Origin: Schizochytrium sp. TIO01
Lineage: Eukaryota > Protista > Bigyra: Labyrinthulomycetes
NCBI GenBank assembly: GCA_004764695.1
Contig: SMSO01000033.1
Coordinates: 1,240,001 to 1,304,000, forward strand
Length of the DNA: 64,000 bases
Direction: 5' to 3'
Shown: positions 38,138-44,607 of the stretch, in pieces
How positions within the stretch are numbered: position 1 is the first letter of the stretch
How the letters are laid out: each line of letters opens with the position of its first letter
Position numbers and translations under genes: made by a program
The notes under the pieces: model-generated
Seen by the model: only the letters and a program-made list of their open reading frames with translations
Database searches by the model: none
What the model was told of the DNA's origin: nothing

Positions 38138-39880
38138 CGCTGTCCTTTCCGTGGCTCCAGAGAAGGATGGATCGGCGCTGCGGGTTCAAGAACAACAGGA
38201 TGAACGCTGATGCTTCAGACAGAGAGCCGCAGTCAGTCTGTCTGTTTCAACGGAGAGTTTTGGTGTTCGAACCTTCGACACGCATAAGCAAAGAAAGGAG
38301 GCTTGCGTATTTCAAAGGACAAGGAGAGAGAAAAGATTGATCTGCTAATTTAAGAAGAATATTACAGAACTGTTTCTCAGTATGCTAGCTTATTAGACAG
38401 CTACAGCTACTTCCGAAGGAAGAGTTAACACTTTCTTTCTTTCTTTCTTTCTTTCTTTTTATCAAGAAGCTCACTTCATCAATCCACGCAGTTAATCTGA
38501 AAGGAGCAATTTCGCGATGTGCCTTGTAAAATTCTGAAAAGCCGTGGCCTCCAGAGGAAAGGGAGGACTTCTGTAAGCCTCTGGTGGTGCCTCGCCATTG
38601 CTTACGCGCTAGACCCAATATTAGGGAAAGAGAAGCATCTCGCCAGAGACAGAGTAGTTTCGACCCCAAGGCATTTTAATTTCCGGAAACAGAAGTAACT
38701 TTAAAAAAAATAAAATAAAAAATAGAATCGAATAGCATTCTTGAGGACAAACACTTAAAAAAAATAATAAAATACATATATATAGAGAGAGAATAGGAAA
38801 GAACAAACAAGTTTTTTCAATTAAAGAAGAACAACTTGATCACTGCCTCGAATTGAACATTCATTTTCCTCTGTGTAGGTAAGTTTGCTCTGAGATAAAC
38901 AGCATTTCCTCGGCCAAACTTCGAGATGAAAGGAATCAACGTCACGTCCTTCCTATCATTGTGCTCTCCAGCGACGAGCTTGAAATAGGGATACAACAAG
39001 TGGGTGGCGGACCTTTTCTTATTCAACAAAAAAGGGAAGAAGGAGTTAGTTAACATTCATGAAAACTAAAGAACAGAACGCAAAGAAAGAACCTGTTCTT
39101 CTCGCTAGTAGCTGAGTCAAAAACTGATGATCTTGCCGATGCGGTATGATCGGCTGTACAGAGCGACGTGTGAGGAGTACGCTGGAAGAGCTCCATGATT
39201 AAAGCTTCCCCTCCCATCGGCAGAGTCAGCGCCACCAATTGGATCCTCCTTCCGCAGTAGAGGCACAGGCACCAACGATACTTCATGTTTGAGGTGGGTG
39301 GTCTTTAATTTGCGACGACTGTTTGGAGTGGAACACAGAACAGAACGCTTGTCCTCCTTTCAACCACTGCGCTTTATACCTTAGTGTTGGTTTATTTATA
39401 AACCAAAAATAATAAATCGTCAGTGTTGGAAAAGAAAAGAATGGTAATACTATCTTCTGAAAACGTTCATGAGTTTAAGAGTGGGGCCCTCAAAAACTTC
39501 ACTAAAGTAAACAAGTTCGGCAATGTTAGTTACAAGACATGCCAAAAAAAGGAAAAAAAAGAAAAGAAACGTAGCGTCTGTTTTAGAAGTAGAAAACTCG
39601 GCCAACAATAAAGAAAGTGGCATTACAGAATCTCCGCTCCTCATAGGCAGATGATTTGCTTGTCTGGAGCTGTTTTGTCCTTCGGACCTGCATCGTGTGC
39701 GCGAGGATTACTCAGGGATGGGCCTGCCTGTCAATGCGGCGCTCTCCGGCTCATGCGATGCAAGAGACGAAACGAAAGAAAGCTTATTCATCACCTGATT
39801 TCATTCTCTGCTGCGACATTTTTGTAATAATATATGCATTTCGAACAGAGGATACCCATTACAAGATAAGCAAAAGCAAA

Positions 39881-39982
39881 CTTGACCTATGAAGTTTGCA
39901 AAACTTGCATTTCCTATGGTGACAAAGTCGGGCGAATGCCCAATCGCGGTTAAAAAACTAACCCGCGACTCAATGGCAATTC
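39881..39982 (-). ncRNA. Putative omegaRNA (Fanzor guide scaffold) remnant downstream of the nuclease stop codon
   Basis: Consecutive stem-loops right after the TAA at 39983. Minus strand reads TCGCGGGTTAgtttttTAACCGCGA (39944-39968), GGGCattcGCCC (39930-39941) and AAGTTTTGCAAACTT (39892-39906). The position matches where TnpB/Fanzor omegaRNAs are encoded; function is inferred. Confidence 0.45.
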
Positions 39983-41179
39983 TTACATCATGTCCTTGGA
40001 TAGGTAACGCAGAAGAATGCCTCTGATGGCGTGAATATCAATCACGCTTGTCTACGTGTTTGCATTTGGGCATTTGACAACCTTGGGTTTTCTGAGCTTG
40101 TCATGGGTGGTACCACAATCATTGCACGCTTTGGATGTATAGTCCTCCTGACAAACTGCAAGTCTGCTCAAGGGGATAGGGCGGAAGCTAAAGTGGCTCT
40201 GGCGACGCAGCACTCGAGCTGTCTTGCTTTTGATCTGTCTTGTTAACTTGCTGATCTTCAGAGTAATTTCAAATTTAAGCAAAGGGATAGCACAGTAGTT
40301 TTGACAAATCCGGAATGCAAGCTTGTGGTGAATCTCGGTAGTCTTGTTTTCATCTTGAGGAGTGCGAGTAGGTAGGTGTGCACGTCGTCAGGCAGTTTTC
40401 CCGTTTCCCTTTTCAGCTATTTTACCTTGAATTCTGTCGGCGCGGCGACAGAGTAAACATATGTATTTCATGTCATTGCCTGAGCCACACTAAATTGTTC
40501 GCCCATCAACATGTACATGGTTCGAAATGATTACTTTGGTGGGGAGCTCTTCCTGGCAAATGCAAAAGCTTTTGAAAAAGAATGCAGTTCTGCATTTCGT
40601 TCTGTTCCAGTCACGTGACCCGACCTCGAAAATATGAGGTTTATCACATTTTGTACGAAATTTGTAATAAGAGCCGATGTCAAGGTTTTTCTCGGGTGGC
40701 TCATGCCTCATTTTCGCTCGACCAACAGCAAGAGATTTGAAAATCTAACTGATTTCTGGACCTCCTACAGCTTATGTTACTCGAAGACACATTCAAGTGC
40801 GTCCAGTCTTTCTTTTTTTCATAGCTTTCCCCAAACATTTTGGGATTGCCTGGTTCATCTTCCAGGGCTTACTTCGTTTTAGGAACCTTCCTGATGCGCG
40901 CATCTTAATGCGAGGCCACGACCTTGTCTTTACCTCTGGACATATCATAAGGAAAGCCAACATTGATTTTGTAAGCAGATCAGTAAGATTCCTCCGGCTC
41001 TAGCTGTTGGAGAGTGTTCTCGTTCGTTTCGTCATGATGACTGTCAAACCATTTTTTCAGTGAAGTGCGCTGGGTTTTCGTAGGATAGACACGGATCTTT
41101 CTTGCACGAACTTAATTATAGTTGTTCCTGGCCGTCCTGCGTGCCTTCAAACACGGTCTCTTCTTTCTTGCTATGCCAT
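39983..41179 (-). pseudogene. TnpB/Fanzor2 RNA-guided nuclease pseudogene (stops, frameshifts, RuvC-I region apparently deleted); start approximate
   Basis: Hand translation of the minus strand gives, in order: VRARKIRVYPTKTQRTSLKKWF (HTH_OrfB-like); YKFRTKCDK..FEV..RDW; GNDMKYICLLCRRADRIQ; EIHHKLAFRICQNY...LKFE (RuvC-II Glu); RQIKSKTAR...SHFSFR; EDYTSKACNDCG...KCP/KCKHVDKRD/IHAIRGILLRYL (Zn finger plus RuvC-III Asp, across frameshifts). Confidence 0.88.
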
Positions 41180-41771
41180 TGCGGTCTATTTTGCGCTTCT
41201 CGTTTTCGGTGACACTACGAAGACGGTGATAATGCCAAGGAGGTCTTTTGTATAGGTGTCAGAGTCCCCGGCGTATGCATCTTGGCTGCGTACCACGAGT
41301 TTGTCATGTTTGCTTCTGATAAAGTGCTCAGGGAGTTTGCGGTGCATGATCATAATCTATCTGGCCGACTCCGCCGCTGTCGCAGGCATCTAGTAGGGCG
41401 CGTAAGCCTGGTCTTTTGAAGTTGATTCCACTACCAATGTCATTGTAGAAGGCGGATGCCAATGGATAGGCCACCCGCCTGGTATTTGAAATCCTCTTTT
41501 TACTTGGCGGAGGACACGCTGGCGTAGATAATAATACTGTATGGTCAGTGCTGCGTTGCTCGCGGCTGCCGGAAGCGCAGCCATGATGTACTTTTCATCG
41601 TCACTTGCAAACATGCGCTCATTTCCGGGGAAGCGCCCGCTGAACTCGCATCCTCCATCGATGGGCACTTGCTGTGACTCCAGATTTCCGGTTGAAATTC
41701 TTTGCTGGCTTGTATTGAAGGTTTGCTTCACTTGCAGTGTTCGAAGCTTGGTGGTTCCTTGGCCATGCCAT
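41116..41771 (-). pseudogene. IS607-family TnpA serine recombinase (transposase) pseudogene; ends approximate
   Basis: Across frames: N-terminal HTH-like YKPAKNFNRKSGVT...RFPGNERMF; IIYASVSSAK*KED (compare IIYARVSSxKQKxDL; 41491-41532); DIGSGINFKRPGLRALLD (starts at 41441); KDLLGIITVFV (compare EDLLxIxxVF). Confidence 0.88.
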
Positions 41772-43122
41772 TTTCTTACCTCGCCTCCTCCACATCTTTC
41801 TTTTTAAACAAGGACCTAAATCTTCATGACATAACATTTGTACGGAATAAAAACTACCATTCGGGGGTTATGTAACTTCTAGCGTTTTCGCAGGTCAAGC
41901 ACGTGCTCCAGCAAAAAGAAAGTTCAAAGGGATTCACCTTCACAATCTCATAAGTACATTTGAAAGAACTAGGATCTCCAAGAGACGATGAAGAATGAAG
42001 GGAGGAAATCAAAACGACACATAGCAGTCGGTAGGTATGCCTAGCAGCTAGGTAGCAAGCAGTAAATGGCAGGTTTCAAGACAAGACAAGACAAGACAAA
42101 ACAAAACAAGACAACCTTCGCTCCAGTACGGAGGAAACAGAAAAAGAACACTAATCTCCGGACTAGCGTGATGTCCGCGCTGTAGGAGCCACGGAAACAA
42201 ATCCGAGAGAACGGTCTTCTTCTGCTAGCAGAGGCTCTCTTCGCTGCTCTCTCTCTCTCTCTGACGATTCGGACGCCGCCGAGGACGAGATCGCGCTTAC
42301 ATTTTAAAAATTGATTGGGCGCCTGAGGAGCCAACAAACAAGAAACTTCTATGCTTAGTTTCTTTCTTTTCTCTCTTCTTGACTGAACTGGAAAGGAGAG
42401 GAGAGGAGAGGAGAGGAAAGGAAAGAACATCAAAACAACGAAACAACAAAAACGTTTTCCCTCCTCTTCTTCCTTTTGGTCCATCTTGGTGGTTCAAACC
42501 TTTTAAAAGATATAGATAGGCCTATACTTCCTTGCTTCCTTCCTTCCTCACCATCCACGGAAAAAAGTAGAGAAACGGAAACAAAGAAACCAGCCAATCA
42601 ATCAATCAATCAATCAATCAATTCAAATAAATAAAAACATTAAAATTAATTAGTTATGAAAGGAGGTTTTTATAATAATAATAAATTGAAAATGAAAATT
42701 AAAGAAGCGCACTTCGTTTGCGATTGTGTACTTCTTTCTTCGCCTTCTGAGTTATGGTCATCTCTGCAGAGCACTTGACTCATTGAGAGAACGACTGACT
42801 GACTGAATGACTGTGAGAGACTCACGAGAGCCATTCGCATACCATGACATTCCAAAGCGAAGGCCATGGCCACGCTGCCGTTGATCATTTGCGGAGCAGG
42901 CCTCGAGAAGGCCGTTTGTTTGGTGATTTGATAGTTAGTTACAGCTGGCTGCAGGGCAACTGGAAGAGGGCTGTTGAGCTCCCTTCATTTGCAGCAACAA
43001 CTATTTTGCAAACTTCTTCTCAAAGCGAGCGAGGTCGTGGATCTTGGTCCAAGAAGTTCTAGGCCGCCGCACTTCAGGTTTCTATGCCATGAGCAAGAGG
43101 GAATTTCTCTCAAAGAGGCATG

Positions 43123-43272
<150 letters not shown>

Positions 43273-44607
43273 TTCATCATCATCATCATCACGTGCCATT
43301 TAATCGAAGGCCATAGATTCTAAAGTCGCAAATTGCAGAGAGCTGGGTGGTTGATTAGGCCCTCCTCAATTATCGCTTCCCTACGCACGCAAATCTCTCC
43401 TCTCTGGCTTTGCAGGCGGCCTTGAAGACAGAGCCACGATTGGCGTCACTTTGCAATTTATCCGCAATCTGCATCAACAAACAAACAAACAAACAGACAA
43501 AGAAACCAACAAACACACAAGCAAACCAGCAACAGCAAACGTTCAGGCTCACGCGGCCAAAGGCTGTCTGTCTGTCTGTCTGTCTGTCTGTCGGCCGGTC
43601 TGTCAGTCAATTCCCAGAGCGCGCGCTGGCGCGCGAGCGAGCCAAGCGATGAGCTCCAAGCAGCGGCGCTCTCATACCTACGTGCTGCATGATGGCGAAG
43701 CGCGGCGGGTCGAGTTTGCGAACTTGACGCCAGTCACTCCTCACAGAGAGGCGAGGCAGTGCGCCTGAGAAGCTGCCAGCTTCACGAAAACAAAGCTGCC
43801 AGCTTTCAGAAAGTGCGCGCTGATGGAAGACCCGCCAGCACAATCGGAACTATGCTCCTGTTCTCTTCATTGGAGCGGTACGCGCATGGAACGTGTAGAT
43901 ACAAGTTTTGCGAGGCCGCAGCTAGCCTTTTTGTCGAAAAGGGTCGAATCGTTCCTCGCGTAATAGGGATCTTCTCTCTGGCCGCAGTGACTGACTGACT
44001 TGAGGGTTGATAGATAACAAGGACGGGAATGGCTGGCCAAAAGCACGGAATGCTGAGCGGAGCGCCGGCTTGAGAAGTCGTTTGAGGAGCAGGTGGATAG
44101 ATAGATAGATAGATAGATAGACGGATGCCTTCAGATTTTGATGACTCATAAAAGGGGCATAGATGTTCCTGTTATCGAAGGCTGACTTAGCACACCACAT
44201 AGTACTTGTTTAATTCCCTACTAAAGGAAAAGAAAAAAGAGTGTTCTAAAAGAAAAGAAAAGAAAAAGAAAAGGAAGGCAAAGGGAGCGAACAAAGCGGA
44301 GACTCACTCATGCATTGATAGATTAATTTATTAATCTAATTATAAAAAAAAACAAGGAAAACACCAAAGGACGAAGATGCTGCTCAGGTTTGGTTTTCCC
44401 TTCATGCACGAAGAAAGCTGCTGCCTTCGCCTCTCTCGCGCTGCATCGCGTCTCATTCCTCTGTCTCCGCCCGCGGTACGGGCACTGATCTCAAGGGCGG
44501 CGGCTTCTCGAGCTGCTTATTGTGCATGAGATTTGCTGCCTCTTTCGCCGAATGACTGACTGACTCTGCACGTCGTGGAATCAGATATTTGTTTGATGCA
44601 GGAGGCC

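Follow-up and report, generated by a model that had tools for sequence, protein, structure and literature searches.

The stretch of DNA analysed here (hereafter the window) comprises 64,000 nucleotides (nt) of the protist Schizochytrium sp. TIO01, corresponding to positions 1240001-1304000 of contig C32 in a genome of 64.07 Mb and 37 contigs. At 39872..41896 on its minus strand lies a dead insertion from an old family of eukaryotic IS607-type transposons, elements in which a serine recombinase gene (tnpA) is followed by a gene for a TnpB-like nuclease, here of the Fanzor2 type. This reading, to which a probability of about 93% is assigned, places the insertion in the chromosome of the protist. 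The identity, boundaries and decay of this copy, and the structure and junction motifs of its family, were established. Eukaryotic IS607 elements with Fanzor2 are already known as a kind, and this one is a new member in a host lineage that the searched literature does not link to Fanzor.

The region 39700-42100 was read in six frames, and the minus strand carries the peptides from which an earlier note on this stretch had proposed a decayed serine tnpA-tnpB pair in the IS607 layout. All strings quoted there were recovered, including DIGSGINFKRPGL, DLLGIITVF and IYASVSSAK* (41529-41500; asterisks denote stops) for the recombinase and RKIRVYPT...LKKWF (approximately 41108-41050), EIHHKLA..ICQNY..KFE, KSKTAR, QEDYTSKACNDCG and DIHAIRGILLRY for the nuclease. 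The layout itself was confirmed by tblastn with the proteins of an intact sibling, which placed TnpA residues 1-232 at 41771-41119 (E 9e-32) and Fanzor2 core residues 1-437 at 41150-39986 (E 3e-65); both matches are collinear, with the frame changing repeatedly, and far beyond chance. In a Pfam profile search of the stop-free pieces of the window, a check that the note had suggested, HTH_OrfB_IS605 scored above its cut-off (E 1.5e-5), followed by Cas12f1-like_TNB (E 2e-3) and Resolvase (E 0.16). In comparisons with more than 40 other copies, homology sets in at 41889-41901 (left) and breaks off at 39878-39885 (right), and the limits of 39881-41899 proposed earlier were nearly exact. The features of the element are as follows (HTH, helix-turn-helix).

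39872..41896, minus strand: complete decayed IS607-type element of the old family, collinear with the intact copy L021; left end near 41896, homology ending at 39879, projected right end at 39872
41772..41896, minus strand: left-end non-coding region upstream of the tnpA start, aligned to old-family left ends and to L021
41119..41771, minus strand: tnpA remnant (MerR-type HTH and serine-recombinase catalytic domain) with frameshifts and one stop, located by tblastn with intact TnpA
41500..41529, minus strand: TnpA catalytic-serine motif IYASVSSAK, followed by a stop, located by the same search
41151..41647, minus strand: decayed N-terminal extension of Fanzor2, lying in the tnpA +1 frame, from frame translation and stop counts
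41407-41360, minus strand: example from this extension remnant, AYAPY*MPATAAESAR, where the intact copy reads ACAPYWTPVTAAESAK
39986..41150, minus strand: Fanzor2 (TnpB-like) core remnant with nine stops in the projected frame, located by tblastn with the intact core of 437 amino acids (aa)
40983..41111, minus strand: HTH_OrfB_IS605 piece RARKIRVYPTKTQRTSLKKWF (Pfam, 24.8 bits against a cut-off of 21)
40513..40545, minus strand: RuvC-I remnant SPPK*SFRTMY in a shifted frame, from comparison with the intact copy and the old copy L002
40112..40150, minus strand: shifted RuvC-II Glu and first zinc-ribbon CxxC, QEDYTSKACNDCG (tblastn; Pfam Cas12f1-like_TNB)
40016..40039, minus strand: RuvC-III region DIHAIRGI, DIHAIRGILLRY, its Arg-Asp recovered only by frame stitching (translation, tblastn)
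39879..39985, minus strand: right end, candidate omegaRNA scaffold, with hairpins S1 (39969-39943), S2 (39941-39930) and S3 (39917-39887)

Outside the element, an (ATCA)n microsatellite near window 43100-43300 reads as INQS repeats.

In a global DNA alignment the window copy shares 67.8% identity with the intact copy over 1929 aligned bases, with 25 indels of which 22 are not a multiple of three, and projection of the intact frames gives one stop in tnpA and nine in the Fanzor core. The earlier description of this copy as dead, with in-frame stops and frameshifts, agrees with these counts (at least 10 stops and 22 frame-breaking indels). Its statement that the RuvC-I (DPG-type) motif was absent had to be corrected, as the motif is present one frame over (40545-40513), where DPGVRSFQTMY in the intact copy corresponds to SPPK*SFRTMY in the window and the catalytic Asp is replaced. 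Directly upstream of this site, about 54 nt are deleted relative to L002, which keeps LDPGVR. As judged from its sequence, the window copy is inactive today, since both genes carry stops and frameshifts, the RuvC-I Asp is lost and the final seven bases of the family, CTAAGTG, are unrecognisable at its right end.

Family structure and classification

The earlier note had predicted intact siblings elsewhere in the genome and proposed a genome search for them. This search returned 71 DNA matches to the window element (63-83% identity) in the same genome, with intact copies among the family, and a protein search returned 110 matches. Eighteen young copies share 95-97% DNA identity and exact common ends, defining an element of approximately 2204 bp (intact reference copy at L021:1388-3592). 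Both the 232-aa TnpA and the nuclease are kept in nine of the 18, and in five others the nuclease frame is kept but tnpA is truncated (L023, L024, L027, L029 and L036, with a tnpA of 51-166 aa and a Fanzor frame open over 661-665 codons). An insertion of approximately 295 bp near the left end was observed in L023, L024, L029 and L037. The remainder of the family is old: the genome holds more than 90 decayed fragments, and every match below 60% protein identity carries stops, including the window copy (47% over residues 248-437). The element is held in many strain-level DNA runs.

An internal deletion running from query position 506-511 to 1557 (window ~41390 to 40343) is common to at least seven old copies, which form a short derivative of about 1 kb with both ends kept:

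C24:867684-868603, short derivative
C30:8989866-8990832, short derivative
C30:9208544-9209509, short derivative
C30:1138488-1139398, short derivative
C7:537156-538011, short derivative
C33:4452891-4453738, short derivative
C24:3050680-3051567, short derivative

Because one and the same internal deletion recurs in these copies, a short non-autonomous derivative must have been amplified, and this amplification implies mobilisation in trans.

The classification was based mainly on the intact copies. Their 232-aa TnpA (L003/L021) matches Resolvase at residues 83-217 (E 3e-20) and MerR_1 at residues 28-66 (E 5e-3), and directly downstream on the same strand lies a tnpB-type gene whose 437-aa core matches HTH_OrfB_IS605, OrfB_IS605 and Cas12f1-like_TNB in Pfam. 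A DPG motif in RuvC-I and a shifted RuvC-II Glu are signatures of Fanzors and pro-Fanzors (Yoon et al. 2023). RuvC-I reads ALDPGVR in 17 of the 18 young copies and has decayed to SPP in the fossil. The RuvC-II Glu precedes the zinc finger by six residues, as seen in QESYTSKTC of the intact copy and QEDYTSKAC of the window, and a Pro occupies the canonical RuvC-II Glu site of the intact nuclease in an alignment to mimivirus L79. This mimivirus ‘TnpB-like protein L79’ (9b0l) was also the best sequence match among solved structures (E 2.5e-19). An AlphaFold model of the intact nuclease (mean predicted local distance difference test score 69.6, core 80-94) gave as its top Foldseek match the same entry, the mimivirus Fanzor2 ternary complex (E 2e-15), followed by ISDra2 TnpB and bacterial TnpB and by Cas12f, with Fanzor1 far weaker (E 1e-4). 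The signature residues and the top sequence and fold match uphold the Fanzor2 label given to the element by the earlier note, and they support the assignment of the intact nuclease as a Fanzor2 with a predicted split RuvC and zinc ribbon in a TnpB-like fold.

The nearest proteins are marine-protist transcripts of the MMETSP set (95% identity), metagenomic proteins (45-49%) and a protein of the dinoflagellate Durusdinium trenchii (46%), and relatives are encoded at 24 loci in giant-virus contigs (L075-L098). The presence of same-layout relatives in giant-virus contigs raises the question of whether the window copy is a leftover of an integrated giant virus in which such an element resided, without any transposition of its own at this site. 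The surroundings would agree with such an origin, as some 20 kb around the copy are without long open reading frames (ORFs); the term gene desert used earlier is fair, no ORF of at least 130 aa being found across 34.3-54 kb save two low-complexity ones. However, homology to the other copies begins and ends exactly at the family’s own ends, and more than 100 copies are spread over many contigs, which makes a viral scrap very unlikely and favours insertion of the transposon itself.

A second alternative is that the element is a bacterial-type IS607 with an ordinary TnpB, present through recent acquisition or contamination, rather than a Fanzor2 element. The gene layout is of the bacterial type, and close matches exist in four bacterial metagenome-assembled genomes (MAGs). 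These four contigs (L099-L102; 595-2116 bp) were the only close prokaryotic matches and contain nothing but the element, and they are probably mis-binned eukaryotic or viral DNA. They had been binned as Hydrogenophaga, Bacteroidetes, Gammaproteobacteria and Myxococcales MAGs; L099 and L100 carry TnpA and the nested-frame N-terminal extension described below, and L101 and L102 are Fanzor fragments. No close relative was found on a credible bacterial contig in a pattern-limited scan of 185,579 prokaryotic genomes that did not retrieve the cyanobacterial pro-Fanzors, and genuine bacterial TnpBs match at the C-terminus only (24-29% identity). The window moreover lies inside a contig of >2.8 Mb in the 64-Mb, 37-contig assembly, with copies on many contigs, the MAG matches amount to 0.6-2.1-kb contigs of the element alone, and both DPG with the shifted Glu and the nested N-terminal extension are absent from the genuine bacterial loci examined. 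This bacterial-type reading is largely refuted and retains next to no probability, and the element is treated below as a eukaryotic IS607 with Fanzor2.

Ends, right-end hairpins and transcription

Among 17 left flanks of young-family copies, 13 finish with CAG and 14 with AG; the right end of this family is ...CTAAGAG, beyond which the DNA is unique. In the old family, five of seven left flanks finish with CTG, and the right end is ...CTAAGTG. The flank dinucleotide is therefore the same as that of the right end in both families (AG/AG in the young, TG/TG in the old), as predicted for the IS607 serine transposase, which recombines at matching dinucleotides (Yoon et al. 2023). No target duplication was found at the junction pairs of young copies, and the two ends of the intact copy L021 show no terminal inverted repeat. 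A 13-nt, 85% complementary inverted match between 39881-39893 and 41887-41899 of the window copy is probably due to chance, since four chance pairs inside the element match at least as well and the intact copy lacks such a repeat at its ends.

The left-flank and right-end triplets differ in their first base only (CAG vs GAG, CTG vs GTG). This parallels ISXfa1, a bacterial IS607 with GGG at the left flank and CGG at the right end, whose TnpB cuts empty sites and spares occupied ones (Yoon et al. 2023). By analogy, CAG and CTG may be the cleavage-adjacent (target-adjacent) motif (TAM) of the young and old families, respectively.

After the stop codon, the right end folds into three hairpins in the young family, the old family and the window copy, with pairing kept in 85% of cells compared with about 40% when the partners were slid. 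A role of this region as RNA is plausible on the basis of these predicted folds. No Rfam family matched the window element or the intact copy in an E-value scan. With respect to the window copy, the protein genes could be dead while the right end is still transcribed as an omegaRNA-like RNA and bound in trans by the living Fanzor2, serving as guide or decoy. In favour of this, the window copy retains hairpins S1-S3 intact, and its S3 core, GAAATGCAAGTTTTGCAAA, matches that of the living family exactly. Against it, S1 and S2 differ from the living family and the final ~7 nt ahead of the would-be guide can no longer be recognised, so that a surviving RNA function is highly unlikely and the window copy is better regarded as dead throughout.

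Transcription of the living family is suggested by two MMETSP ORFs, P0001 and P0121 (601 and 617 aa), which are 99% identical to copy L024, and by small contigs on the nuclease and tnpA region in two oligo-dT RNA-seq runs; these contigs give no information on RNA ends. Run X1 is probably DNA of the same strain, since the flanks were covered without differences.

Several observations weigh against the interpretation of the ends, the RNA and its expression given above. At the left end, the initial 5-7 bases are not constant from one young copy to another, leaving the exact crossover point uncertain. Reported Fanzor2 TAMs are G-rich, for example GGG in mimivirus, and CAG/CTG is only partly alike. 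Covariation within the hairpins was no higher than in shuffles (0.167 vs 0.173), and for this reason the right end is only a candidate omegaRNA. Finally, the RNA evidence consists of contigs, for which DNA carry-over is possible.

The Fanzor2 N-terminus and the +1 frame of tnpA

In this protist and in giant-virus relatives alike, tnpA encodes the first ~190 residues of Fanzor2 in its +1 frame. Ahead of its HTH, the Fanzor frame is open for about 200 codons, spanning most of tnpA. Relatives with 37-46% identity, 555-711 aa in length, have in common the motifs CVPFW, LWSCT and SWFTV together with a basic stretch. A search with the N-terminal extension alone, bounded by a shared-word limit, gave two proteins. 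The segments containing the N-terminal motifs were modelled by AlphaFold with moderate confidence. In the mimivirus Fanzor2 the N-terminal domain is structured and functional, comprising RuvC-R, a thumb and a nuclear localization signal (Schargel et al.).

Across tnpA, the +1 frame contained no stops in 10 of 14 loci from the protist and giant-virus contigs, and the +2 frame contained 5-31 stops. Under synonymous shuffles keeping the protein and the codon content, the probability of zero stops ranged from <2e-4 to 0.55 per locus. The start codons of tnpA and Fanzor are 4-10 nt apart in seven viral loci, and in the protist copies the three ATGs that come next downstream of the tnpA start all belong to the Fanzor frame. 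In contrast to the living copies and nine of 13 giant-virus relatives, in which the +1 frame is open and encodes the nuclease N-terminus, four genuine bacterial IS607 loci showed 3-13 stops in this frame, with tnpB starting at the end of tnpA. The lineage-level variants of the young copies also differed between the two regions, amounting to 4.7% at third positions of tnpA vs 13.4% at third positions of the Fanzor core, with singletons equal.

A Fanzor2-only locus in a giant-virus MAG contig (L080:2800-4467) keeps SPFW, LWSP and TWFNV with a tnpA frame full of stops, and the N-terminal motifs are therefore no mere shadow of TnpA. The window fossil keeps an imprint of the overlap, as the region 41151-41647 has one stop in the tnpA frame and two in the Fanzor frame, compared with 12 in the third. 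The identity of alternative-frame proteins was tried as a further line of evidence and rejected, since the +1 frame (0.257 vs a null of 0.207) was accompanied by an excess in the +2 control as well (0.232 vs 0.197).

Taken together, these data are consistent with a model for the IS607 elements of eukaryotes and giant viruses in which the structured N-terminal domain of Fanzor2 is overprinted in the +1 frame of tnpA and both proteins are made from one capped mRNA by leaky scanning, the arrangement being a derived adaptation to eukaryotic translation that is absent from bacterial IS607. The chances of this model being correct, taken as a whole, are considered about even. The nested-frame layout was not described in the papers found by a literature search, which does not in itself prove its absence from the literature.

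Relation to known systems and biological meaning

The eukaryotic and giant-virus IS607-Fanzor2 elements (‘IS607EU’) include ISvMimi/ApmFz2 of mimivirus, ISvAR158 and ISvNY2A of chloroviruses and Ac3 and Ac4 of Acanthamoeba. Like them, the present family pairs a serine TnpA with a TnpB-like nuclease encoded downstream on the same strand. The nuclease carries DPG, has its RuvC-II Glu six residues ahead of the zinc finger and is extended at the N-terminus, where a basic stretch precedes the HTH. Behind the nuclease gene lies a conserved non-coding right end, and target duplication is absent, as in the known elements. It differs from them in its candidate left-flank motif (CAG/CTG rather than GGG), in its high copy number with an amplified short derivative, in the dead state of the window copy and in its right end of ~110 nt, compared with ~200 nt reported for mimivirus. 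It further differs in its thraustochytrid host lineage, which is new to Fanzor in the searched literature: no paper tying Fanzor to Aurantiochytrium or thraustochytrids was found, a result that does not by itself establish absence from the literature. With the bacterial IS607 elements (IS607 of Helicobacter pylori and ISXfa1 of Xylella) and the cyanobacterial pro-Fanzor IS607 it shares the gene order, the arrangement of domains in TnpA and, presumably, a matching dinucleotide as the site of insertion, and with ISXfa1 also the difference between left-flank and right-end motifs noted above. Fanzor1 (Spizellomyces SpuFz1, 8gkh) is likewise a eukaryotic RNA-guided nuclease of the TnpB family with DPG and a shifted Glu; unlike the present nuclease, it rides DDE-type or Helitron transposons with inverted repeats and target duplications.

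From these comparisons, a life cycle may be proposed for the element when active. The serine recombinase TnpA would excise the element and insert it at a target whose two-base core matches the right end (TG in the old family, AG in the living one), without terminal inverted repeats and without target duplication. Fanzor2, loaded with an RNA from the right end and the adjoining flank, would then cut the emptied donor site beside the motif that formerly lay to the left of the element, presumably CTG in the old family and CAG in the living one, and repair from the sister copy would restore the element at the donor site, a form of homing.

On its own, the fossil is of little weight, since its transposon type is known and more than 90 copies have decayed in this genome. 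The fossil does represent a dated layer, and together with the young family it shows a long residence of IS607-Fanzor2 in a protist lineage, in at least two waves with first TG and then AG as the core dinucleotide. The amplified short derivative means that the transposition machinery acted in trans in a eukaryote. Most work on Fanzors has so far been done in vitro and in human cells. As a natural Fanzor2 system with multiple and apparently transcribed copies, the living family would allow the role of Fanzor to be tested in its own host. The nested frames, if true, would explain how both proteins of a bacterial two-gene element are expressed in eukaryotes and how the N-terminal domain specific to Fanzor2 originated. 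Beyond the fossil itself, it is these living siblings and the nested reading frames that constitute the interesting part of the finding.

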